Of a stretch of DNA of 64,000 nucleotides, positions 7,088 through 38,084 are shown piece after piece. Position 1 is the first letter of the stretch. Every line of letters starts with the position of its first letter. The notes beneath the pieces were generated by a model. It was not told where the DNA came from. It ran no database searches and saw only the letters and a program-made list of their open reading frames with translations. The stretch is from Dimorphilus gyrociliatus. Taxonomy: Eukaryota; Animalia; Annelida. The stretch covers positions 124,001 through 188,000 of the forward strand of contig CAJFCJ010000029.1 of NCBI GenBank assembly GCA_904063045.1, in the 5' to 3' direction. A program made the translations under genes and the position numbers.

Positions 7088-8209
7088 TTATAAATCCTCT
7101 TCCTCATTTAAATTTTGCTTTTCCTCTTCAACAGGTACTCTTTCACCATTTCTTAATAGGTTCGTTGTAGCTGAGGGCCTAACTTCCATCCCTCTAATAT
7201 TGGTTCTTTCGTAATCCGTCATACGAGTTAAACGGAGCCTTCCACAGCTGAGTACTTGTCGGAAGCTTTTTCGAAAGTTTTCTGACAAAAAGGCATAAAG
7301 GACGGGATTAATGCAGGAATTACCATAGGCCAAGATTGCGGCTGCGACATGAACTAAATGCCATTCCATATTTTCTGGGAAGGCATCCCATGCCCTTGTG
7401 GTAAAAACCAACTGAATAGGCAACCAGCAGAATATGAAGCAGACGATAACGATAATAATCATACGCGTTACTCGCCGTTTGCTACGTAACGCCTCACGAC
7501 TTTGATTTCCTCCGGGTACGGCTCCGAATAAGAGACGTCTGAGCATTAAGCCATAGAGAACGCAGATTAGCAGAACAGGGAGGCAAAATCCGAATACGCA
7601 AAAGCAAGTGTAAAATATACGTTTCTTTATTATCCTTATTGTCATGCCTTTATCATAGAGAACCATATGAATACACATACTTCTATTCTCTCCAGAATGG
7701 TTGTATGGCACAAAATTAAAGTCATTCCAAGAAGGGGCATTGCTACCCACAACTACTACCCAGAGAGTAACAATAAAGATGACTGCATTTTTTGTAGTAC
7801 GAAAACGCATTGATGAAATGGCATGGACGACTGCCAGATAACGATCGAAGCTCATGAGTACGAGAGTATAGATGCTAATATAGACAGTTATGAATTGAAA
7901 AGCAAGGTGTAATCGGCACATAAAAGTTCCTGCAACCCATTCATGTAAAATGTAAACGCTAACCATATTGGCTGGAATACAGAAAATAAGGAAGATGAGA
8001 TCGGCAAGTGACAAATTCAATATGAGCAGATTTGTTGTGTTCCTCATTTGTTTATTCGTAGCTATTACAAAAATAACTAAAGAATTTCCAATTAAGCCTA
8101 CGATGAGCGTTATGATAAAGGATATCGGTACGAAGACGCGGAGAAGCGTTTCATAGGCAACATCACTCGCATTATTATGTGTATTATTATTTCCCGTAGC
8201 GTTTTGCAT
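7088..8209 (-). CDS. AstA-R: Rhodopsin-class neuropeptide GPCR, allatostatin-A/galanin receptor family (373 aa, single coding exon)
   Basis: Seven hydrophobic segments with NTTNLLILNLSLADL (TM2), LVLMSFDRYLAVVH (DRY), KRRVTRMIIIV and CWLP (TM6), and AYGNSCINPVLYAFLSENFRKSF (NPxxY plus the AstA/galanin-type tail). N-terminal N-glycosylation sequons. The ATG is directly preceded by a splice acceptor (TTCTTTACAG|ATG). Confidence 0.9.
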   Translation of the reverse strand: MQNATGNNNTHNNASDVAYETLLRVFVPISFIITLIVGLIGNSLVIFVIATNKQMRNTTNLLILNLSLADLIFLIFCIPANMVSVYILHEWVAGTFMCRLHLAFQFITVYISIYTLVLMSFDRYLAVVHAISSMRFRTTKNAVIFIVTLWVVVVGSNAPSWNDFNFVPYNHSGENRSMCIHMVLYDKGMTIRIIKKRIFYTCFCVFGFCLPVLLICVLYGLMLRRLLFGAVPGGNQSREALRSKRRVTRMIIIVIVCFIFCWLPIQLVFTTRAWDAFPENMEWHLVHVAAAILAYGNSCINPVLYAFLSENFRKSFRQVLSCGRLRLTRMTDYERTNIRGMEVRPSATTNLLRNGERVPVEEEKQNLNEEEDL

Positions 8210-9699
8210 CTGTAAAGAACATTTTATTATATTTTCTATAAAAGTAGTGTAAAGCGAAGGTCGTAAGGTCTAACTGGAATAAAAGGGACTTTAAGATAGC
8301 CTTAGGGCGTCTAATTAGAACAGCCAGACGTTCATATCTAATCTGTCTCTAACGCAATTCATGACAGGTGCTACTTTTTCCTCGCAAAGAAATAAAAAAT
8401 CGAAATTTTTGCAAGGAGCACGTAGGCAATTATCTTGTATTTATTTTACTTGGAAAGACAAGACAAGACTGAACGTAAAAAGAAGTCAAGTATTCCTTTT
8501 ACACTACGCATCTACTCCACCTCCGACCCCGCCCCCTACTCCCTTTGAAGGCTATTTCATTTTCGGAATCAACCCGTTTAGAGTTAGACCGCACGTTGCA
8601 AATTTACTAGCCTCATAAATATTCATCGCTTTTCTTCGATAATCTTATCTTAGGCAAACTCGGCTACTATGCTTATAATATTTATTTTTTCTTATGTCTT
8701 AAATGCCTACTTTCGTTTAGATTAAAGGCTTTCGGACAGAGAATTTCTTCAAAGTTCGATTGAGGATTGTTTAACAATACAACTAGGAATCTTGGTAAAA
8801 GGTTAAAAAAATAATCGGTTCCCTTACATCGCCAAAAAGAAAAAGGGAGAGGAAGAGGGAGAAAGAGCGAGAGAGAGAGAGAGGAGAGAGAAAAGCTATT
8901 GAATACCCATACATGCATATTTTCATGCCATCTTCAATTAATTCCTTAACAAGTTGTCTTAAAGAAAAGTAGAAAAAAAACTCTTTAGACGTATTAGATT
9001 ATTGACTAGGGAAACAGCTGCGAATAAATTAAATTTCCCTTATTTTAAAAACATTAGAGGAATCGTATGTATAATTAAAAGAAAATAGATTCATCTTATC
9101 ATCAATTATCTATTGACTTTATAACTTAATGTTTATTTTATGCTTTTGTACAAATGTTGTAGTAGATCATTCCGTACATGTGACGGTATTATTAATAAAA
9201 AATATTATATCTATCTCTTTCTCCTAAAAATGAAATTAAAAAAAAACTAGTGTTTTTCTCTGTTACAAAATTTAACATTTCATACTTGAATTAGTAAATA
9301 AGCCTTTGAATGCGAAACTATCAATCACCAAGCGAATTTCAATAGATAAAAACATGGATGATAGTTATTGTATTTTTTTTCCTTTTTAATATAATATACT
9401 CTATTTTTGAACAGTGACAAACTCAATGGTTTTTATTTTTATGATCTCTTCTTTATAATAATAAAAAGTTTTGAATAGAAATAGATGAAAAGATCTAAAG
9501 AGAGCAAATTTCTTTACTGGATTATTTTAACTTTGTTTCATGCATGAATACTGTTTTCTAATTACAAATTGTTTGGTATTTGTGTTTTTTCTTCTTTTAT
9601 TCCACAAGATATTCGTGGAAGGAAATTACAAATGTTCAGAGTATTAAATTACAGTTTTAATCAAGTATGTAATACCATATTTTACCAAGAGACTATGCT

Positions 9700-24102: not shown

Positions 24103-26030
24103 TGCACAAGAGTTTCGAAAATGGATCTCTGACTTTGGACGCAGTCTGAAAGTCAAAAAGTCAGAATTCATCACATGGATTTTTCATGGTGAAGATGATT
24201 CTCTAGTACATCAAGACCCAGATGAACGGTCATCTTGTTGTAATGGAGAGTCTATGGAGATGGTTATTTTCAGGTAAGCAGATAAGAATTATCAAAGTTA
24301 AAAGGTTTGAAACAGGCCTGTTTTTTCGTTAAACAGTAATGAAGATAAGCATGAAAATGCCCAAGAAAGTCAAGATTTCTTGAACGATTTAAGTGAAATT
24401 CTAAATTGTATTGAAGGCAAAGAGAACAATGATTTGCCATCGACTTCTCAACAGGTTGACGACCTAGTTGAATACCAAACTACTTTTTTCGAATTTCATG
24501 GGAACATGGCTATTTCCAGGTAGGCAGATATGAAATATCGAAATCAACAAGTTTAAACAAGGTAGTTTTTTCGTCAAATAGTAGAAATAACATCGAAGAT
24601 GTTCAACCTGAGGATCAAGCCCTACATATAGGAAAGTATGGAGTGGAAGAGAACGGTGATGAAGATCATGATCAACGCCAACAAGTTCACAACCTAAATG
24701 AAGGACAAACTGATTTTATCGAAGAGTTTGAGAACATGTAAGCAGATAAGAGATACGAAGTCAAAACATTTGAAACAGGCATTTTTTTCGTTAAACAGTA
24801 ATGAAAATAAGCAACATATGAAAAACGGTGTAAACAGTGCTCTTGATTTGCCGTTGATGTCTCCTGGTGAAAACCATGAAGAACGTGAACGAGTTTGCAA
24901 CCAAAGTGAAAGGCAAATTTTACATTTTATAAAATAATAAAAGTGATAAAGAATTTTTTCACAGGAAATTTGAGTCGAATGTTAAAAATATTTTTATTAA
25001 CATGGGTCCAACTCCAGAAGAAGTGTATTTAAATATTGGCAAGATAGTCCGACTTCTATCAAAAGAAGATGTATATCCTATTGAAACAGTCGAAAAACAC
25101 AAGGACATAAGAGAATTACTTCAGCAGCAGTTTAAAGAAAGTTATAGAATGACGAATTCAATAGCTTGCGATAATTGCGATATTACGAACATTGTTAATG
25201 TCACCGTAGGGCATTTCACATTCTCAAAGATCTACTTTTTGATATCCTTCTTCATCTGGATATTAGAAAAAAAAAATGAATCAGTCAAAGACATTGGTCA
25301 AATTGCAAAAGATGCTTTTAAAGAGGAGTTTGTAAACAATCACTGGAAAATTGTAAGTGAATTTTTGCAAGCCCGAATAATAATTATGGAATTTAGTACC
25401 AAGACGCTGCCTTGTTTTCTACAAATTCTGGATTCAAACATGCATCCAGAGAAAGTACTTTTCTTTGTAAGAATGGCAGAGAACCCTTCGGAAACTTTAG
25501 CGCTTACCTTTGTCAAGCGCAATGAAAATATCAGAAAATTGAAATACCAAAAATTTTTCTTGTATGATGACCAGGTACTAATCAATTACGATGTCTACGG
25601 AAAAAATCATCAAGGCAAATGGATCTGTAGGGAACCTTTTTGTCCCGTTACGTTGATATTTCCAAATGATGAGAAGAAATTGCCATGCAGTGTTGGATTT
25701 CATACTCATACTCAAAAAGGTAAGGCTTTTCTGAGCATTCTTAAAGAAAAGCTCGAAGCAAATGAAGACATCTGTCAACCAGTCCAAAGAATAGCCTTTC
25801 CTTTTGTGCTGAAGATCAGGCTAAAAGCTTCTAAATATGGGGGGATACGGAAAAACAGGCCGCTGTATAACATGAAAATAAGAAATCTTTGGGAAAAAAA
25901 GCCCAAAGGATGGCAGGATGATCTGGTTTTCGAAAACCCAAATAAGCCAGGATCAAAATTAAACAAGAAGATGATTAGGAAAATTTTAAAATTTCTTATT
26001 CAGAAGTGTCCATCACTCACATATACTTAA
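24103..26030 (+). CDS. Orphan multi-exon protein: acidic repeated N-terminal exons plus a 342-aa terminal region; 5' end unresolved
   Basis: Exons 24103-24273, 24337-24519, 24582-24737, 24799-24912 and 24965-26030 splice in one frame, all at phase 2. The last intron needs a GC donor (AG|GCAAAT). The terminal exon contains ORF 25002-26030. Confidence 0.7.
24274..24798 (+). repeat. Three related ~62-nt introns (tandem exon-intron duplication)
   Basis: 24274-24336, 24520-24581 and 24738-24798 all follow GTA(A/G)GCAGATA...GTTT(G/A)AAC...TTTTTTCGT(T/C)AAA(C/T)AG (one copy has ATTT for GTTT). Confidence 0.85.
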
Positions 26031-26379
26031 ATTTTATCTTATTAAGGCTATGGTTTTTATTTGTCCCTTTTTCTTTGTGCTGAACTTTCTAATTTTAATA
26101 ATTTTCTTAAACTAATATTGAAAATGACATAATGCACTTTAATATCAATACAAGTTATTCTGCACCTATATTACTATATCTACTTTTAAATAGGTTTTTG
26201 GCGTAAGCCTATCGACTCTCTTTAAGTTTAAGACAAGAATTAGTACTTTTTTGATATATTTTTCATTCTATTTCATTTGGTGAGGAGGAACAAAAACACG
26301 GTTTTAGAGAATAAAAGTCCCTACTATCGTCATGATATGTCCTGACCTCACCTTAATTATGAAAAAAGAAGAAAAGAAT

Positions 26380-26450
26380 TGCATTGGCCGGGAATCGAAC
26401 CCGGGTCGCCCGCGTGGCAGGCGAGCATTCTACCACTGAACCACCAATGC
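26380..26450 (-). tRNA. tRNA-Gly-GCC: tRNA-Gly(GCC) copy 1
   Basis: 71 nt GCATTGGTGGTTCAGTGGTAGAATGCTCGCCTGCCACGCGGGCGACCCGGGTTCGATTCCCGGCCAATGCA. Cloverleaf with anticodon loop CTGCCAC, A and B boxes, and a T-rich terminator. Confidence 0.97.
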
Positions 26451-26805
26451 TTACATGAATAAAAATGCCACTTGTTGACATCATTGCAGGAGGAGCAGTC
26501 AACCGTGAAACTTTTCTGTTGGTTAAACACAAGTTGGTCTTAAAATTCACATCTTTTTAATATAAGTTTAAAAATGGTAAAAAATATATTACACGAATCA
26601 TACGAAAGTAGTTTTTTTAGGTGAAATTCTAATCAATTATAGCGGTTCAAAAATGCTAAATATTAATACTAGGTTAAAAAAATATATAGATCAACAGCAG
26701 GCGGACCATTATTGAAAAAAACATATTACCTACTATTAGTACTAGTATTCTTCAAATGATATTTTCTAACCTCACTTTAATTATGAAAAAAATAAACAAA
26801 AGAGT

Positions 26806-26876
26806 TGCATTGGCCGGGAATCGAACCCGGGTCGCCCGCGTGGCAGGCGAGCATTCTACCACTGAACCACCAATGC
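26806..26876 (-). tRNA. tRNA-Gly-GCC: tRNA-Gly(GCC) copy 2
   Basis: Identical 71-nt sequence. Confidence 0.97.
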
Positions 26877-27429
26877 TTACGAAAAGATGCTATATTAAAT
26901 ACATGAACGAATCTTGAACAAAAAATTAATGAACAAGTTAAATTTCTTTATCTAATAGATAAAGCTTATTAGGCGATTTAAAATTGTACAAATCACCTTA
27001 AATATTCTATTGTAGCCACCATTAACTGCTAACAGAATTTCTCCTAACAAAGGCAACTGCTTACATGTCAAAAGAATAGCTATCATCTTCTATATCGCAT
27101 CAATTTCTCCTTTTACTTTGTAATTTTCTACATCTTATTGATCCAGTTTTTCCAGAGTAATTTTTATCGTTATAATCGTTACATGAAAGTTTGACTTCTC
27201 AATAATGGTTTTATGCATCACAAGAAAATAGTGTCAAAGAGAGGTAAAGACAGTGTTTTTGCAATTCTATTGTCAGCATATGAATAAATTTTGTGATTAT
27301 CTCTATATCTTATTTATGGATTAGATAAAAGATTATCATATTTGAGCGTTATTTCAAAATATGCCGATTATTCTACATTTATCAATGATCAGCAATCGTT
27401 GATGCATTTCGTATCACATCTTTTCGTCA

Positions 27430-27500
27430 GCATTGGTGGTTCAGTGGTAGAATGCTCGCCTGCCACGCGGGCGACCCGGGTTCGATTCCCGGCCAATGCA
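27430..27500 (+). tRNA. tRNA-Gly-GCC: tRNA-Gly(GCC) copy 3
   Basis: Identical 71-nt sequence followed by T runs. Confidence 0.97.
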
Positions 27501-27742
27501 ACTCTTTTGTTTATTTTTTTCATAAAAATATTCTTTTTCAAGAAGATAACATAACAAATAAATTTATAATAATAAAATATTATTACTCAACTGTAAAATA
27601 CTGACAAAACTGATAACAGACAACAGATACTAAAGCAACGGCAAAGGATTATACTTCTTTCAACAGAATAATTAGATAAGTCATATTATAATAGCATGAA
27701 TACATTGCACATTTAAAGAGTATGCAAAAGAGAGCAAAAAAT

Positions 27743-27813
27743 TGCATTGGCCGGGAATCGAACCCGGGTCGCCCGCGTGGCAGGCGAGCATTCTACCACT
27801 GAACCACCAATGC
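27743..27813 (-). tRNA. tRNA-Gly-GCC: tRNA-Gly(GCC) copy 4
   Basis: Identical 71-nt sequence. Confidence 0.97.
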
Positions 27814-28058
27814 TTACAGAATAGTTTGGTAATTCATCGAAAAACTATCAAATACTTGTAGAAATCTGTTATTGGTTGTAAAACAATAGACAATTGTATC
27901 TATACAAAAATGATAATTGCATCATCTCTTTCAAGCCACACCCAAACTTTAAATAGCCTTTATTTATGATTTATACCATTTAATTCTTGTCCAACAACAT
28001 AAGTTTACTGGAAATCTTTCAAAGTGGAATATTTATGTTGATTTAGATAAAGTGAAAT

Positions 28059-30779
28059 ATGTCAGCCTCACCTATTGTTGAAATTGTAGACCGGAAGTTA
28101 AAGCTGAAAAATGAAAATTTTCAATTTTTATTCAAAGAATACGCGAATAAAAAGTGTATTTTCATAGGAGGAACAGGTACGGCTAGATGTGGAAAATCTC
28201 TATTACAAAATCTACTCTCTCAAGATTTGCTTCACTTTAAAAGTCATTTTCATAAGATATTTGGCGTAGAGCCTGGCGATACATCTTTAACAGAAGGTAC
28301 TATCAGCATCAATGTTTTACGCTACGTCTTCTTAAAATTATACTCTTTCTACAGGAATAACAATTTGCAATGAACCAATTAAACGGTAGAAATATAATTA
28401 TAATCAATTTAATCAATCTAAAATTTGAAATTAAACAGCGAAATCGAAGGTGAGGATTATTATATATTTATTGTTGATTCCCAAGGATTATTTTCAAGAG
28501 ATAAACTGAATAAGCATGATCTTTTCATTCTTTCTTACCTGCTTTCATTTTGCTCTATTCTCCTCTATAACGTTATCAAACGGATATCGGAAAATGATGT
28601 CAACGAAATTAGAGTAATAACTCCTTTATTTTTCATTTTCTTTTATAATCTAATGAATAAATTATTTGTTTACATTTTATTTTCTTTTTTCAGTTTTGTA
28701 CGAAATTAGGTATCGACGAAAATGAGCAATTTCAAACTTCTAAGAAACTTGTTAGGTTTTAACAAACATAAATTTATAAATTATTTAATTTATTAAGAAC
28801 CGATGCTAATTTTTAAGGGACTCTTATTAGTGGCTCATGATAGGCCTGAAGATGATGAATTAGAGCATGGAAAATTCAACAATGAATATAAAAGGATGGA
28901 GTATAAGGTTTCATATTTTTAGGCCTTAACATGTTGTTCTTACGAATCTTACACATCTAAATGGCTTTATCTTCTAATTAGAGATCAGAAGACACAGCGG
29001 TCTTTTTTCAAGGCGCCTTTAGAAATGTACTATTTTCATTATTACCTGAACCAGATTCTGCCGTTAAGAGGAAAGATTTCTCATTTAAAGTATCAGGCAA
29101 GAATCTTGTATTGCTATTTATTAAGAAACAGTTACTTTTATTAGCAATCTTTAGATCTTGGTTTAAAATTCTTTGATGCTATTCAATTATTGAAAAATGA
29201 TTTGTTCAATGAGATAGTCTTGTACAAGGATGTTGCTAAAACTGGAAATGAGATGTATGAATACTTGGAGACCACTTTTACTACTTTACAAGAGAAAGAT
29301 CATATAGTAAATTCAAGAACACCATTAGAACGTTACTCCTACGGATGTTTGGTGGATTTTGGAGAACAACTTTTATATGAGATGCAATCATCTTTTGAAA
29401 CATCTATACATAATTTGAAATTTGAAGAAGAGAATTGGTCAATTATACAAAATGAAGCTATTTCCTACGATAAAAAATACACTCTCGAATTTAAAGATCT
29501 ATTAAAAAGAGAAGAAAATCTGCAAGATAATGATAAGATTTTTCTAAAGAAAAAATTTAAGAAAAGAAAACAGATTTATTTTAAAGGAGAATTAGAAAAA
29601 ATTCAAAAACAATTAAATGAAATTAAAGAAAAATTGCTAATTATTAGTCAGCAAACAATTGAATATGAAAAATATTGTGATAAAAAGTTTCAAGATCTAA
29701 TTGAAAATTACAAAAAAAGTGATCATTTCTTTTTAGATGAACAGTTTGAATTATCTAAAGATAAAGCTATAGAAGATATTAGAAAATTATCAATTAAACT
29801 GGAATATATGACAATTGAACATATAGATAATTCATTAAAAAGATTTTGTAGAAATTGTCAAGAATTCAAAAGGAATATGAACTTTGATAATGAAAAAATT
29901 AAAAAAGTAGAGAAATTAATTCTCAATAGACTTTTATTTGTTGTTTATCAGAGTAATAGTGAATTTGATATTCAACAGCCAATAATCACTGACGATCTTT
30001 TAGATAAAAGGATAGAAGAAGTTTTAAAAATGGTTATAAATGAAATGGGAGAAAATTTCTATTTAATTTATAAAGAAAATGAAGGAAAGTTAAAATTAGT
30101 TAAAAAACAAATATTTGAAAAACTAAATGATGGAAATAAACTTAAAGATGTTTATAATTTTCTAAAGAAAAAACTGGTAACTAATTTCGATAGACATTTC
30201 GAACTATTCTGCTTGAAAAGTAATGACGAGACTACGGCTTATTACACAGTTGATATTAAATATCAATTTACAAAAGAATTGTTAGATTTTACATCTTACT
30301 ATAGATATATTGATGTGGATTGCTTATTAGATCATCGTTTACACTTTATTAATCATTTTATAAAGACTGTACTACACGAAAAAAGTCTATTAAAAGAGAG
30401 GGGGAAACCACAAGAAACCGTACAGGGAAACCAAGTCTCATGCTGTTTAGTTTGGTTAAACAGCAGATTCAGAAGCCAAAGCTCGGATATTTCAACTTGC
30501 GAAGATTATGTTCATTATGATTATCTATTGAAAACTAATGATTTCTCAAATGTGTATCTTGATGAAATTCAACTTAGAAAGGAAGTATATTTTAAATGGA
30601 AGAATGTGAGAAATGATAATATTTCAATTTTAGATTATGAAAGAGAGAGTGATATCTTGAAGGTTCTAAATTTGAAGAGGATTATTACCAATAATGAAAA
30701 ATTAATCAGTTTATTCAAAGATTATATGCAGTTAATCCCTTTAAAGTTGAGAATGAACAGATCTATAATTGAAGATTGA
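28059..30779 (+). CDS. Atlastin/GBP-like (GB1/RHD3-type) large GTPase, paralogue A, ~776 aa, 7 exons, no obvious TM segment
   Basis: Exons 28059-28296, 28355-28385, 28439-28613, 28694-28750, 28818-28907, 28982-29096 and 29155-30779. G1 GTARCGKS, G2 TEGITIC, G3 DSQG, G4-like LLLVAHD, LFSLLPEP, then a long helical/coiled-coil region. Confidence 0.85.
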
Positions 30780-30914
30780 AAATTACTATATACTTATAAA
30801 CAAATAATAAAAGTTACGCAACTTTATCTTACTGTTGTTTTTTTTTTAATGTCTATCTTTCAGAATTCGATTAAAACTATATTTAAATGGTTTCTATGGA
30901 AAAATCAAAAAAAT

Positions 30915-30985
30915 TGCATTGGCCGGGAATCGAACCCGGGTCGCCCGCGTGGCAGGCGAGCATTCTACCACTGAACCACCAATGC
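30915..30985 (-). tRNA. tRNA-Gly-GCC: tRNA-Gly(GCC) copy 5, between the two GTPase 3' ends
   Basis: Identical 71-nt sequence. Confidence 0.97.
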
Positions 30986-31161
30986 TTACGACATAGTACC
31001 AATAAAATTCAAAATTCCAACTGAGAACTATTAATTTTGAGGACCTCTTTTCTAAAATTAGATTGGAATAAGGATTACTATTAAAAAGTGTGTAGTTTTC
31101 TGATCTAGTTTTTTAATATAATTAAAAATTCAGAAAAAAATCAAAATGCAAAAAAAGAGTT

Positions 31162-33601
31162 TCATAGAGTTTCAAAGTTATGGATTTGCTGACATTTTAG
31201 CTTCATTCTTACTGGTAATACTTGAAGATATTCCTGTGTCATTTCTACGCTTCTTTCTTTTTTAAATAGATCTAGGAATGAAACTTCTTGATTTGAAAGA
31301 AAATCCTCCTGGGCGGAAGCTGATGTTTTTTTATCAATCCGTTTTACAATAGACTTGATTATAGGTTTTAAACCAAAACCAACAGCACCACCCACACTTG
31401 CAGCTCCTGCAGATGCACCAGTTATTCCTGCCGCTAATGGGATAGTAACTCCTAACGTTGGAATAATTACAGCTGCGCAAACAGCGGCAGGAGCTATTCC
31501 CACAATAGTCAATAAAGCATGCCCAACAGTTGCTCCTATTGTCAAGTTTAATTCTTTCTTAATAAATTCATTAAACTCTTGCAAATCTGCATATCTTGAT
31601 TGCATAGTAAATTTTAAATCTAAATCTATGTTTAATTCAAACAATTGGTGAATTGAATCGTTCAGATAGAGATTATGCTCAAAATTTTCGAATGCTTCTT
31701 TCCTGCATTCTTCCAGTTCAACTTCATTCAAAGATATTTGATTTTCATATTTTTTAACGAAAATGACATCAAAATGTTGTCTTACATTACGATCAAGAAT
31801 TAAATATGCTTTTTCAAGTTGTACGCTTCGGTGATAAATGTTATAATATACTTTCTGAATATTATCTGTAAATGATCTTAAACAATCATATTCAGGTTCG
31901 AAACCAAAAAGAGTTTTTAATTCGAGATAGGCCTTCGAAAAGAAGTTTTTGTGAGCGTCTAATAGGAATGGGCATTCTAGAAATGGTTTAGGATATTGAA
32001 TAGAGGTAGTGAACTTGAAAATAAACGATTCCATATTAGCTTTATAATTATCAATAGTTGATTTGAGTATTCTCTTTTCTCTATATATTTTAAGATTAGC
32101 ATTAATTTTACAATTAGCCCTTTCAGTAAATTTGCCCATTATCTGTTCATCTTCATTCTCTCCTTTAATCGAATTGTATAGTGTTACCTTCAGTTCTTCA
32201 AGTATAGTCTTACAAACAAAAGAAAAAGTTTCTACTGAAATTGAACTTTGAAGACAAGAATCGAATTCATTTTGAATTCTATCAGATAAAATATTTTCAA
32301 CACCTTCCAAGATCATATTAATATTCATAAATTTTGAATAAGAAGCTTCATTGGGTGTAATTCGTTCGATAATTTCTTTCCTCGAGCTTAAACTATCAAA
32401 TATATGATCAATTCCAACATTTAACGAATTAGTGTTTAATAATTCTTTAGATAGACAATATAACTGATCCATCATGAAATTTTTCAAATCATTTACATAC
32501 TTAATAAAATCATTAGAAACATCTGCAAATGAGGAGAACATAGTTGATTAAATACTCTAGTATCAATTTCTAGCTTGAATTCAAACCTAATAGTAAATCT
32601 TTATACAATCCAGAACAAATCTGATCTCCTGGATTTGGCAGAAGATAACAAGAAATTTTTTCAAAGCTCCTACTAAATGGATAATTCTCCAGCTAAGATG
32701 TAAAATTTTTAGAAAAACAGTTTATTTAATAAAGAAGATGAAGGATATTACTTTTAAATTAGTCTTTAAATAGTCTGTATTATCGCCATACGAATAATTA
32801 TTTAAATACTGCCAATCTCTAACGATAAATATCAAATTCTAAATTCAAAGAATGAATAAGTTAAAGAATATAAATATTAAAAGGTTTCTCCAAAGTTAAT
32901 ATACCTTTTGTCTTCTATTGCAACTTTCCCCAACTAATCCGTACATTGAGCAGAACTAGAATGTTTTTTTTAGATGATTTATACGATAGTTGTTTAATAT
33001 TAAAAATAATTATTTACATCAAGTTCTTCCAGATAGGCAGTTGTTAAACGTTTTTCAACATTAAATAGTACTATTGAACAAAGAGAAAACAAGAACGAGA
33101 GGATAAATCTATCGTACTTTCCCAGCTCTTCAATGGTATTTAATCCTTGGGAATCCATTATAAATGTAAAAATATCCTCACCATCAACATTCCTTAAACA
33201 AAAATACTACAGTTCTTTTTTATATTCACAGTAAGGGTACTTACTGTACAATTGGCCTACTCCAAAATTGAATACCTTTATTAAAACAAAATTGGAAAGG
33301 GAAATTAAAGAGATAATAACTATAAAAGAGTCACTTAATTTTATGATTTACCTCTAGTGACTGAATTCATTCCGGAATCACTGGCGAACCCTTGATCTTT
33401 TTCAAGTTTGTCATAAACAGTCTCATTTATAATTAAATTTTGTAGAAAAGATTTCCCGCATCTCGAGGAACCAGAGGAAGATATAAATAAACAACGTTTA
33501 CCTTCACAAAATTCGGTTAAATATATAACTCCTTCCTCCTCCAAACTAATTGATCCATCATCGTCAATTGATAACAATTGTATTACTTTACCATTATCCA
33601 T
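31162..33601 (-). CDS. Atlastin/GBP/RNF112-like large GTPase, paralogue B, ~686 aa, 7 exons, C-terminal hydrophobic Gly/Ala-rich hairpin
   Basis: Exons 33601-33352, 33275-33245, 33192-33018, 32955-32905, 32838-32752, 32692-32587 and 32522-31162. G1 GSSRCGKS, TRGIQFWSRP, G3 DSQG, LIFIVRDW...YSYG and ISCYLLPNPG, all atlastin-like. TM-like segment ALLTIVGIAPAAVCAAVIIPTLGVTIPLAAGITGASAGAASVGGAVGFGL. Confidence 0.88.
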
Positions 33602-34506
33602 CTTATTATCATCGCGATTGAAGATTTTTATAGAAATAATAAACCCTCTATTTTCAACTCTGTATAACTGTTGAAATTTATAGTCAATTCATATTGAGAT
33701 ATTAGTAACAAATTATTTATAGTATCTATTAGTCATATACAGTATTATAATGACCAATGTTTTTCTATTAGATCATACAATTTTCTCTTTCTTTCCAGGT
33801 ATATTTTGTTATTTAATATTTAAAGGTCAACTTTATTGTTTACCAACAAAAGCACTAATCGATCAATGTATTTCTAATATTTAAAGGAAATCGTTATCAA
33901 TTGATTTTTTTATCAGAAATATTCAATTTATCGCAGTTAATATAAACATAACATATTTTAATGAAAAACCCTTTAATAGCAAACTAATGAATTATGGAAT
34001 TAGATAACTGAAGAGAGAGATTAAAATATATTACCTTGATATAAAACCCTCGACGGAGATATGTTCTTAATTTTAATAAATGGTTAACAAACCAGAGCTT
34101 GTATAATAACAGATGGCGTTGGCCACATGTGTGTTATAAAAAATTGATTATTAATTTTATACCTTTTTTTTTAGGTTATAAACTATATATATATTTTAAT
34201 ATATATATTACTTTCTAAATACTAAACGTTTAGTTTCTGGAATGAAATTAATAGTTAAATTCTTTATTCTAAGCAATAAGTATTGAACAATTGTTGTAAT
34301 CTCTGTCTACAAATTGTAGAACACATCAGATTGAATATTTAGCAATTTATTACTTTGTAAGAAATAAACTTATGCAAACAATTCCATTATTTTACTTCAA
34401 AGGAAGCGTATTTAACATTAAAACTGTTTAGACAAAGGATACAAAAGATGTAAACATTTCTAAGAAATTTACTTTAAATGCAAAAATTACCAAACTTCTA
34501 TCGTAA

Positions 34507-34577
34507 GCATTGGTGGTTCAGTGGTAGAATGCTCGCCTGCCACGCGGGCGACCCGGGTTCGATTCCCGGCCAATGCA
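34507..34577 (+). tRNA. tRNA-Gly-GCC: tRNA-Gly(GCC) copy 6
   Basis: Identical 71-nt sequence followed by ATTTTTTT. Confidence 0.97.
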
Positions 34578-34694
34578 ATTTTTTTATCTTTTCTAAGATA
34601 ACTTTTTTTTTTTTAAAAAAAAGACATACCATGTTTTTACTTAACTTTATAGCTAATGTTTTGAACCCAAAAGCAATAGCCGAGGATAAAAAGT

Positions 34695-34765
34695 TGCATT
34701 GGCCGGGAATCGAACCCGGGTCGCCCGCGTGGCAGGCGAGCATTCTACCACTGAACCACCAATGC
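34695..34765 (-). tRNA. tRNA-Gly-GCC: tRNA-Gly(GCC) copy 7
   Basis: Identical 71-nt sequence, convergent with copy 6 across a 117-nt spacer. Confidence 0.97.
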
Positions 34766-36737
34766 TCACATAGGAAGTTGAGCAAATTGATAAGACGACC
34801 CCTTAAACATCAGTAAATTGGCTAATAAGAAAAAGTCATAAAAGGTTATTTGAACTCTGTAAATTAACTCAATTTCCGGAAAAATATTCAATTTACGTCA
34901 ATTTTTGCGTCCGAATTGCATCAATATTTTATACCTGATGTTCCTGTATTAACGAAACTTTTGACATATTGGAGAATGTTGTTGGGTTTATTATAAATAA
35001 AAATTCGTCTGTTTGATAATAGAAAAAGTATTTAAAAGTAATCGGATATATTTGATCCAGTCAATCCTCTTATACTCCAATTGCCTATTTACTAAACACA
35101 GGGTGAGACACTCTTACTCCGTCTTTTTCTCTCTCTCTCTCTCTCTCCCTCTCTCTTTCTCTCTCTCTCTTTCTCACATATCTCCATCGAGCCTCAGAGA
35201 TTTTAATTAAAAAATAATAAATTAATAATTAAACTAATAGAATAGTATTTTTTATTAAGAAAAGTAATGAATTATATTCATTCCCTTTCATTATACTTAT
35301 TTATATGTTATGTTATAATTATCTATATAGATGTAAATGGGAATTTATGCCTTGTTGTGTAAGCTATATTTAATCATGTAAGACGATCATTTGTGTACAA
35401 CTAAATCCCTTATGACAAACACCACACCCTTCAATTATGCTATAATATTATTAATCCTAATACGACCTTTAACTTTTTGAGAAATACGATGTGAGACTAG
35501 AATATTAAAAAAAGAAAGAGCCTATATTATGTTATTATGTTAGATATACATGTGAATATATAGTATTGTATAATAGAGCGTAAAGTATTCATCATTCAAT
35601 TCTAATAAACGTTGTTTTATTAGACTTTTTTATATTTTATAATTAATGCCTGCTAAGCTATAAATAGACTTGATTTGATTTGTTGTAAGTATTAAATTAA
35701 GTATATGACCTTTACTTATAGATTCTATCCCAATATCCTACTTGAAAAAATACAAAATCCTTTTCAACATCTGCGTATAAAATTCTCCTTCCGCTGCAAG
35801 ACATTAGCTTTTTTCCTCTACAAAAACGTCCCCAAGTAACAATTAAGAGGCATAATTTTTGACTGTGAAATTATCCACTTTAAACGAAAATTTTGGCTTA
35901 ATCGTTTTCATCTTGGCATTTTCGATTTAGAAATTTGCCTGGACTTCCTTCGCTTGTTACTTCTTAATTCTATAATCAGATGACTGTCCTTCATGAACGA
36001 CTCTCCTACAAGATGTTCAAAGGTCAATCTCTTGTCAAGATAAATGCTTCTCTTACTCTTAATTAGTGTAGAGTAGAGTTTTTATTGCTTATTAAGGATC
36101 CTAGTTAGTTTCATGGTAGATTCTTTCTTTGTACACTTTTTCTTGCGTTCCAATAATAAATCACGAAAGAGTTTGTGTATGAATAACGCTCACTGACAAG
36201 GACTAACCATCAAAATAATTGAAACTTCCTAAGATAAGATAAATTGAATATTTATCAATCACTTGATAAAACTATGATTGATCTATTTAGTTGATAATAA
36301 TTGAAAGAAGGAAATACTAATGTTAAAATTTCAATTGACTGCATTGCTAAATTGACAAAGAGGGTCACCTTTTGTGGCTCTTATGACATCTCTTTCAAGT
36401 GTTTTTTGACTAAACCTATTGAGATTCGCTAAAAGTGTACACTTCTCTTATTGCGTAACCTATGTTTATTTTTAGAATAAATTAACCGATATTTTCGTCT
36501 TTCTTTGAAAATTGATTCAAATATACAGCCTTACAGACAAACATTTCATCTTTATAAACTAGCCATTTAGATGGTCAATTTACTTAAGCTTCTTTCAAAC
36601 ATCACTTCTAAAAAGTTAAATGCCATCTATCGGATAAGCCCGAAGTAATATTGGTGCCTTAATACAAAGTCACGCCTCAAAGATTTTGCCGGCATGTATT
36701 GGACCGACGTGGCGAATCGTCTGCTAAGTACACGACG

Positions 36738-38084
36738 ATGTTATTCCCTGCGTTCATTTTCTCAATTTTTGCTTATTGTTTAAACGCCCAGGAAGTACCA
36801 GCAGACGCCTATTATGAAGTATATACGGATGAACATCTCTTTAGTATTCGTAATAGTTTGTCATCTGGTGCAACACGTCTTTTCGTCCACATGCACTCAT
36901 CCCTATGCGAAGAGCAATCGACTACACCCCCGTCCACTTCCAATGTGATTTTCTTATCTTACGATTTCGTCACCACTCCCATTTATGTATGGTATAAATC
37001 AAAAAACTTGACCAGCTTATGGAATATATCCCGCTGCGATACACTTGTTCATGTGAAATCTGACACAGATTTTGAGATTTGGAACGGTGTATCTTCGTCA
37101 AGAGAATGGATTAGGCAGCAACTAGGGCAAGACATCGAATTGAAAAACGACCTAGATGAAGCTGTTAGGGTTGACATAGAACATGACGGTCATAAAGAAG
37201 AGATTTTTCTAAGAAGAAGCGAACAGGAAAATATAAATGTCCCGTTTGGCTGTAAAATATTAGCTTTTAATAATAGAAATGAATTTATATTCGGTAGTGT
37301 ATTTAATAATCAAGAAAGGCGTGTTATAATAAGGAAAAGTGGTACAGAACCATCTGCCCATGATTGGAAAAAGAAAGTTGAAAAAATAGAAGAAGAAAGC
37401 TTAGAAAATATTCGATCAGTTCTCATTAGGCACGTAGAGAGAACTCTATTAACTATAAAACAACCTGTGATGATGAGATCATTATTAAAAAAGTTATGGA
37501 AAATTAAGAGGACGCCTAAAGCCCTTTTATCGCGATTGAGGAAAGCTGAAACTGAAAGGTTGGAAACGATCAACTCGGTTGTCTTTTCTCTGCCAATAAC
37601 TAAGGGAAAACTGACGGACAATGAGCACGAGATTACCAAAAAGATGGCAAAAAAAGTCGTAGAGACGTGGAGTGGGAGGGAGTTAGCGATCTGTAGGATG
37701 TCTCATGTTATTAGTGTTGGTAAGGATACGAAGATGTGGCGTCAAATAAGAACGCCTGACAAAGAAGCAATAGCCGCTATTATACCACTCGAATCAGATC
37801 CCGGAGTCAAATGGCCGTTGGTACTGGAAGCGCCAGATGGCGTTCTCGAGACTATAGACGACCTTAGCGTTGGTGAAATGCTAGTGTTCGAAGGTTCGAA
37901 GGTGATTAAAAGTAGGCCTACACCTTATGCAGGAAGTTTGTACAGATTTGTCGAATTACATTGCGTTCCTTATGCATGGGAATGGAAGTATAACGAAAAA
38001 AATATGGTACTCAGGCACATGGATCATAAAATACCGTTAATACCAATAGGGCATACAGGAGCTACTGTGCACGACGAACTTTAA
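36738..38084 (+). CDS. ER-lumenal protein (signal peptide, C-terminal HDEL) with a degenerate 2OG-Fe(II) dioxygenase-like domain, 448 aa, intronless
   Basis: The first ATG is at 36738 (the ORF track starts at a TTG). Hydrophobic leader MLFPAFIFSIFAYCLNA, final residues HDEL. The segment KWPLVLEAPDG...LSVGEMLVFEG..IKSRP..Y..VELH resembles a DSBH oxygenase core. Confidence 0.85.
   Translation: MLFPAFIFSIFAYCLNAQEVPADAYYEVYTDEHLFSIRNSLSSGATRLFVHMHSSLCEEQSTTPPSTSNVIFLSYDFVTTPIYVWYKSKNLTSLWNISRCDTLVHVKSDTDFEIWNGVSSSREWIRQQLGQDIELKNDLDEAVRVDIEHDGHKEEIFLRRSEQENINVPFGCKILAFNNRNEFIFGSVFNNQERRVIIRKSGTEPSAHDWKKKVEKIEEESLENIRSVLIRHVERTLLTIKQPVMMRSLLKKLWKIKRTPKALLSRLRKAETERLETINSVVFSLPITKGKLTDNEHEITKKMAKKVVETWSGRELAICRMSHVISVGKDTKMWRQIRTPDKEAIAAIIPLESDPGVKWPLVLEAPDGVLETIDDLSVGEMLVFEGSKVIKSRPTPYAGSLYRFVELHCVPYAWEWKYNEKNMVLRHMDHKIPLIPIGHTGATVHDEL

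Follow-up and report, generated by a model that had tools for sequence, protein, structure and literature searches.

A tRNA-Gly(GCC) gene cluster around a convergent pair of atlastin-like GTPase genes in the annelid Dimorphilus gyrociliatus

The tRNA genes and the two GTPase genes of the locus

The 64,000-nucleotide (nt) stretch of the Dimorphilus gyrociliatus genome analyzed here and called the window (G000:C29:124001-188000, part of a 77.9-Mb assembly) contains a group of tRNA-Gly(GCC) genes, designated t1 to t7, and two GTPase genes, A and B, that lie among them (Table 1). In an initial annotation of the window t3 to t7 and both GTPase genes were described as a mirror-symmetric cassette, and its origin was ascribed to an old inverted duplication of a unit composed of a tRNA pair and a GTPase gene. 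The last exons of A and B match at 100 % the public D. gyrociliatus proteins DgyrCDS14013 (P0003) and DgyrCDS14014, respectively. The G+C content of approximately 30 % and the introns of 55–80 nt at the locus agree with the published genome, in which the median intron length is 66 bp (PMC7854359). That genome was described as very compact, with short intergenic regions, and neither tRNAs nor GTPases A and B are mentioned in the paper (PMC7854359).

The seven tRNA-Gly(GCC) genes were located with ARAGORN within 8.4 kb, and their strands from t1 to t7 read - - + - - + -. A GCC-anticodon cloverleaf was called for every copy, and the RNA polymerase III (Pol III) terminator, a run of TTTT or longer, is found in the first 10 nt of the trailer in all seven cases. 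The copies are identical over the full 71 nt. The total number of tRNA-Gly(GCC) genes found in the genome is nine, seven of which belong to the cluster in the window; the remaining two, identical as well, are lone genes on contigs C21 and C4, far from any GBP-like match.

A and B are convergent. Their stop codons are separated by 382 nt and t5 lies in this gap, in agreement with the initial annotation. Read in its own direction, each GTPase gene is preceded by a same-sense and then by an antisense tRNA-Gly (t3 and t4 for A, t7 and t6 for B), and this part of the original description was confirmed by the ARAGORN coordinates and strands. The exons of both genes were located by exact matching of the public proteins onto the DNA, and the resulting exon map bears out the reported identity in length of exon 2 (31 nt) and exon 3 (175 nt). 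Six intron phases had been said to be common to both genes; this holds for the first five (1,2,0,0,0 in A and B) but not for the sixth, which is phase 1 in B and phase 0 in the public model of A (between FSFK and QSLD). Intron 6 of A (29089-29156) can be modelled in two ways, as the public GT-AG intron of phase 0 or as a GC-AG intron of phase 1 with the donor at 29097, and the alternative would fall in the exact codon aligned with intron 6 of B. The phase 1 first reported for A would require this GC-AG intron.

Protein B matches PF02263 with 56.3 bits (Pfam cut-off 21.1), and its nearest solved structures are those of atlastin-1 (E 4e-21). It carries the P-loop SSSGSSRCGKS, the DSQG motif and a G4 motif, IVRDW. 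The Gly/Ala-rich hydrophobic stretch of approximately 55 residues near the C-terminus, conserved in the orthologue P0002, is a candidate for the atlastin-type hairpin, and with it B would resemble the atlastin/GBP GTPases in having the G domain, the helical region and the C-terminal hydrophobic hairpin in the atlastin order.

Protein A differs from these GTPases in several respects. PF02263 was not matched by the whole protein, and exon 3 alone scored 20.3 bits, which is under the Pfam cut-off; the match to atlastin-1 is weak (E 1e-3) and the hydrophobic hairpin is missing. The P-loop (GGTGTARCGKS) and DSQG motifs are present, but VAHDRP (exon 5, 28818-28850) occupies the place where B and the atlastins carry the RD(W) of G4, giving HD for RD. 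Judging from these motifs, the nucleotide specificity or activity of A may be altered. The G4 region reads (R/H)(D/N)RP in A and in the examined paralogous proteins of contigs C35, C77 and C95, the latter three having R(N/D)RP, and nucleotide binding may be altered across the subfamily formed by A and these paralogues.

In the GTPase domain A and B are 31 % identical (286 residues), and no relationship was detectable between their large last (C-terminal) exons, the C-terminal halves being unrelated. The contrast between strongly diverged proteins and fully identical tRNAs (71 of 71 nt), to which attention had been drawn initially, is thus real. The nearest proteins in other animals are atlastin-like proteins of the 'GB1/RHD3-type' from flatworms, ostracods and arachnids. 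A and B are members of a fast-evolving clade specific to this lineage, to which the stronger GBP-domain matches of contigs C19 and C4 do not belong. No orthologue of A was found outside D. gyrociliatus: with the last exon as query the gene itself was the only match, and the open reading frame (ORF) of exon 1 had no match. For B, an orthologue from a related species was identified on L014, a 3.2-kb contig in the Logan assembly of the Sequence Read Archive (SRA) run SRR23372229. It is 52 % identical to B in the last exon and 50 % in exon 1, and has the same 31-nt exon 2. L014 ends 59 nt past the stop codon, and the comparison covers B and its upstream side, stopping short of t5 and A.

Table 1. 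Coordinates of the tRNA genes, GTPase genes and other features (positions in the window unless a contig or locus is given; t1 to t7 as called by ARAGORN)
Feature	Position	Strand	Description
t1 tRNA-Gly(GCC)	26380..26450	-	outside the cassette first described, same cluster; 3' trailer homologous to that of t2
t2 tRNA-Gly(GCC)	26806..26876	-	within inverted-repeat arm 26781-26920; partner arm 27386-27525 (t3)
t3 tRNA-Gly(GCC)	27430..27500	+	by its flanks a recent inverted duplicate of t2, direction either way
t4 tRNA-Gly(GCC)	27743..27813	-	antisense, upstream of the ATG of A; 5' leader 12-mer common with t6
gene A (DgyrCDS14013)	28059..30779	+	777 aa, 7 exons; 100% match to P0003
t5 tRNA-Gly(GCC)	30915..30985	-	between the stop codons of A and B, same sense as B
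gene B (DgyrCDS14014)	31162..33601	-	686 aa, 7 exons; P0001
conserved non-coding block	34081..34151	-	between B and t6, from alignment with the related species; CTCF-like core CAGATGGCG at 34110-34118
t6 tRNA-Gly(GCC)	34507..34577	+	antisense, upstream of the ATG of B; position and orientation kept in the related species
t7 tRNA-Gly(GCC)	34695..34765	-	flanks unlike those of every other copy
C1 mirror tRNAs	L015:1723-3597 (G000:C1:2969722-2971596)		Thr(AGT)- Lys(CTT)+ Val(AAC)+ ... Val- Lys- Thr+
C5 Gly(TCC)/paralogue array	L010:443-8440, L011:1393-2775 (G000:C5:2412000-2430000)		tRNA-Gly(TCC) genes interleaved with single-exon paralogues

Symmetry of the locus at the DNA level

The region 25000-37000 was compared with itself, as had been suggested in the form of a dot-plot. 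All repeats of at least 80 nt, direct or inverted, consist of a tRNA gene and short flanks, and the identical stretch shared among the copies amounts to 71–98 nt. The remaining matches are 20–44 nt long at 64–89 % identity, the inverted ones being of 20–30 nt at 71–86 %. Within this region no homology between the arms of the mirror cassette was found beyond the tRNAs.

One old inverted duplication of a unit made of a sense tRNA-Gly, an antisense tRNA-Gly and a GTPase gene, with t5 at the axis, would account for the orientation of t3, t4 and A, which mirrors that of t7, t6 and B. The lack of arm homology speaks against it, and so does the spacing, which is not mirrored and differs 2- to 4-fold between the two sides: t4 lies 245 nt upstream of the ATG of A versus 905 nt for t6 and B, and the gap between t3 and t4 is 242 nt versus 117 nt between t6 and t7. 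The symmetry is further broken by t1 and t2, which had been left out when the cassette was cut from the larger cluster. Both are located another 0.6–1 kb to the left, exclusively on the side of A, which leaves four tRNAs to the left of A and two to the right of B. For two convergent genes flanked by one tRNA pair each, the chance of a mirror orientation is 1/4.

The flanks of the tRNA genes do not follow the mirror pattern of the outer pair either. t2 and t3 form the arms of a 140-nt inverted repeat (I1) of 92 % identity, with flank scores above every shuffle, and the trailers of t1 and t2 match, which defines the flank group t1-t2-t3. No flank similarity was found between t3 and t7, and t3 resembles t2 instead, which is another argument against the duplication of a whole unit. 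The first letters of the trailers had been proposed as weak support for the mirror pairs. Although t3 and t7 indeed start with ACT and t4 and t6 with ATTTTTT, the former start is also present in t2 and the latter in t5 and in the C21 and C4 copies. The trailer starts were rejected as marks of mirror pairs, as they are terminator T-runs that other copies have too.

The GTPase family and its relation to tRNA genes

Approximately 11 members of the divergent atlastin-like family were found in the genome, in addition to the stronger GBP-domain matches already mentioned. Besides A and B, two family members each lie head to head on C35 and on C77, two are convergent on C17, and C95, C103 and C43 carry one gene each. 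The public proteins P0003, P0001, P0034, P0039 and P0076 were used as gene models of A, B and three paralogues, and the rest were compared exon by exon. Exons of 31 nt and approximately 175 nt recur in the C35 and C77 paralogues, and the C95 model shows the same exon order, with the corresponding exons of approximately 28–31 and 133–136 nt. Since this exon structure is family-wide, it says nothing specific about the relationship of A and B. That the two genes are paralogous and built alike fits the inverted duplication of a tRNA-containing unit, but the likeness in exon structure loses its value as evidence for it.

A maximum-likelihood tree of G domains was constructed from 23 rows, comprising A, B, the C35 minus-strand gene (P0034), C95 (P0039) and the best matches from other animals. 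It covers four of the approximately 11 family members; those omitted are the C35 plus-strand gene, the C77 minus-strand gene, the C17 pair, C103, C43 and the partial P0076. The four worm proteins form a single clade (support 100/100), in which (C35,(A,C95)) is the sister group of B (support 100/96). A constraint uniting A and B as a clade cost 23.6 log-likelihood units and was rejected in the approximately unbiased (AU) test (p-AU 0.008). A is therefore closer to the C95 and C35 genes, whose loci lack tRNA-Gly, than to B, which is difficult to reconcile with one inverted duplication of tRNA pair and GTPase gene.

Taken at face value, the tree places A in a derived, fast-evolving subfamily that would have spread to other contigs, with B as a slowly evolving, atlastin-like founder. 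The duplication that separated A and B would then be the deepest split in the family and not a private event of these two genes, and the simplest origin of their adjacency is an old local inverted duplication of B that gave rise to the A lineage. The initial proposal was thus right in regarding A and B as old inverted paralogues; the inclusion of the tRNA pair in the duplicated unit finds support neither in the flanks of t3 and t7, nor in the tree, nor in the DNA homology.

The locus had also been viewed as tRNA-scaffolded, and a search for tRNA-Gly next to other GTPase paralogues had been advised. At the six other paralogue loci neither an intact nor a decayed tRNA-Gly was found. No tRNA was found within approximately 5 kb of the paralogues on C77, C17, C95, C103 and C43, the C35 locus has one tRNA-Ile only, and no decayed tRNAs were detected at any of the six loci by a low-threshold Rfam scan (E <= 1). 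With the locus of the window included, 2 of 8 loci of the family have a tRNA within 5 kb, and 1 of 7 if it is set aside. The view of the locus as tRNA-scaffolded is not supported by these results, and the lack of tRNA relics at the paralogue loci is a further point against the joint duplication of tRNAs and GTPase gene.

The head-to-head pairs were mapped to L001:4854-5114(-)/5340-5612(+) on C35, where the first exons are approximately 200 nt apart, and to L002:4480-4665(-)/4840-5028(+) on C77. Inverted gene pairs are formed repeatedly by the atlastin-like family without any tRNA.

Other tRNA clusters, origin of the arrangement and possible roles of the tRNAs

The other tRNA clusters sampled in the genome are of mixed orientation and several of them enclose unrelated genes. 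Convergent pairs of identical tRNAs are also present in the Gly(TCC) clusters of C16 and C5 and in the C1 cluster. The latter is itself mirror-symmetric, (Thr- Lys+ Val+)...(Val- Lys- Thr+), and there is no GTPase nearby. It appears that tRNA units are commonly duplicated in inverted orientation in the D. gyrociliatus genome, and the pairs on C16, C5 and C1 together with the C1 mirror pattern indicate that small inverted duplications are a normal mode in which tRNA clusters grow here. The Thr-/Lys+ unit of C1 recurs on C34 (L017:5573-5835).

The genes enclosed by these clusters are diverse. An 843-residue ORF inside the C1 cluster (L015:5639-8170) has a signal-like N-terminus and consists almost wholly of Q/R/L-rich repeats (QQR...LAQQ), the C26 Cys cluster contains small ORFs of unknown function, one of them cysteine-rich, and a G-protein-coupled receptor (GPCR)-like protein and a secreted protein are encoded inside the C5 cluster. 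The initial annotation had listed three observations that would count against its idea, and two of the three were made, namely GTPase paralogues free of tRNA-Gly and tRNA clusters beside unrelated genes, the latter on C1, C26 and C5.

Taken together, the locus is probably an ordinary tRNA cluster, the principal one for tRNA-Gly(GCC), around an older convergent pair of atlastin-like genes, and its mirror pattern is most likely incidental. Its growth and reshuffling would be due to local duplications of small size, both direct and inverted, as in the other clusters sampled. The same purifying selection acting on every copy, probably helped by gene conversion, would keep the tRNAs identical, and we infer that these two processes are the cause of the identity; the GTPase genes evolve fast. 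With selection of this kind on all copies of the tRNA, their identity says nothing about age. The partial mirror, t3 t4 > A > t5 < B < t6 t7, would be a coincidence of tRNA orientations, and we infer chance as the cause of the symmetry. It is most likely not the trace of a single inverted duplication that involved a tRNA pair and a GTPase gene, and a history in which such a unit was duplicated around t5 is considered unlikely, the majority of the tests being against it.

In many features the cluster is similar to animal nuclear tRNA clusters, which also have many identical isoacceptor copies within a few kb, T-run terminators, mixed orientation, local duplication and interspersed protein genes. 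It differs from them in holding seven of the nine Gly(GCC) genes found in the genome, in enclosing two paralogous GTPases and in one adjacency that is kept in a second species. At the level of annotation, the cluster shows where this model miniature annelid has its main supply of Gly(GCC) tRNA. It illustrates that small direct and inverted tRNA duplications can mimic designed symmetry, and it calls for caution, since identical tRNAs beside diverged genes neither date nor define the duplication unit.

Several observations weigh against an ordinary cluster with an incidental mirror pattern. The rows of C35 and C95 have long branches in the tree. t4 and t6, the inner mirror-equivalents, have in register in their leaders the 12-mer AATTACCAAACT, a length of match reached by 7 of 2000 shuffles, and this could be taken as a trace of the inverted duplication of the tRNA-containing unit. 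The 12-mer is not found in the leader of the t6-equivalent tRNA of the related species, and the likeness of t4 and t6 is thus probably younger than the species split, whereas the split of A and B (31 % identity) is older than it, since B and its orthologue are approximately 50 % identical. The leader match is probably the result of recent gene conversion spilling into the leader rather than a relic of the original duplication. The same 12-mer is present at the loci on C77 and C95 too, not beside a tRNA but inside an unrelated dispersed repeat, which is near-identical over at least 85 nt and lies near the GTPase paralogues (L002:6420-6510 on C77, L004:605-695 on C95).

The adjacency of t6 and B is another such observation. 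L014 starts with 30 nt that comprise the last 25 nt of an antisense tRNA-Gly(GCC) gene and 5 nt of its leader, and we attribute its start inside the tRNA to an assembly break caused by a repeat. This antisense tRNA-Gly lies approximately 725 nt upstream of the ATG of the relative's B gene and matches t6. Judged by this comparison, the t6-B adjacency is orthologous and old, older than the species split, and at least part of the tRNA/GTPase linkage is not recent churn; the age of the adjacency also speaks for a duplication of the whole unit. Together with the lineage-specific atlastin-like family, the conserved adjacency offers modest leads to tDNA (tRNA gene) position effects and to GTPase evolution in Spiralia.

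The C5 cluster also weighs on this side. Its Gly(TCC) genes are interleaved with at least four single-exon paralogues of approximately 400–460 aa and 26 % identity, several of which adjoin a tRNA, and no Pfam match was found for this paralogue family. The array looks like an old tandem duplication of tRNA+gene units, and such co-duplication therefore seems to take place in the D. gyrociliatus genome. The C5 paralogues form a family other than the GTPases; the co-duplication keeps the idea of a duplicated tRNA-GTPase unit alive in principle, yet it also indicates that such units would not be peculiar to GTPases. In two of the C5 paralogues (L010:3102-4316 and 7247-8440) a convergent tRNA-Gly lies 100–310 nt past each 3' end.

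The initial annotation had also considered the identical tRNAs as recombination handles, t4 and t5 allowing changes in the copy number of A and t5 and t6 the inversion of B, by which possible immune GTPases would be diversified. The direct repeats t4/t5 around A and the inverted repeats t5/t6 around B are in the positions needed for this, small duplications occurred recently among t1-t3, and inverted gene pairs of the family exist elsewhere. However, the inverted pairs on C35, C77 and C17 arose without a tRNA, the identical stretches of 71–98 nt are short for homologous exchange, the assembly has a single version of the tRNA/GTPase locus with no alternative haplotig, and in the related species B is oriented in the same way towards the tRNA upstream of it. 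Such a role of the tRNAs is regarded as extremely improbable.

In yeast and in mammals, tDNAs serve as barriers or insulators. By analogy, the tRNAs of the window could be kept in place by their effect on the neighbouring genes transcribed by RNA polymerase II (Pol II), either as TFIIIC/TFIIIB boundaries or, in the case of t5, as a block to read-through. The tRNA kept upstream of B in the relative and the compactness of the genome with its short intergenic regions (PMC7854359) are consistent with this possibility, and for a tRNA repeat of the human genome a boundary function has been put forward (PMC4041453). On the other hand, conserved adjacency is also yielded by plain microsynteny, the other members of the GTPase family do without tRNAs, and tRNA clusters in this genome flank unrelated genes. 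Retention of the tRNAs through such an effect is quite unlikely.

Compared with known tDNA insulators (the yeast HMR tDNA, human tDNA insulators and the 1q23.3 tRNA repeat), the locus is similar in that tRNAs flank Pol II genes near a CTCF-like promoter motif; the likeness is positional only, and the paralogous genes elsewhere lack tDNAs. Boundary, roadblock or handle roles of the tRNAs are plausible from what tDNAs do elsewhere and would be compatible with an ordinary cluster around an older gene pair. A combined scenario, in which dinophilid tRNA-Gly genes became fixed around B, and perhaps A, as a Pol III boundary or read-through block and their repeats also allow occasional inversion or loss of a GTPase gene, is very unlikely; if true, it would make the locus a conserved Pol III/Pol II functional unit.

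The alignment with the related species revealed only one well-conserved intergenic block, of approximately 55 nt, whose distance from the tRNA is 310–370 nt in D. gyrociliatus and in the relative alike. The block probably belongs to the promoter of B, and its position relative to the tRNA is one of the points in favour of a boundary function. The CTCF-like core of the block occurs 5 times in the window versus 0.62 expected, and CACATGTG/CACACGTG are adjacent to this core in the conserved block.

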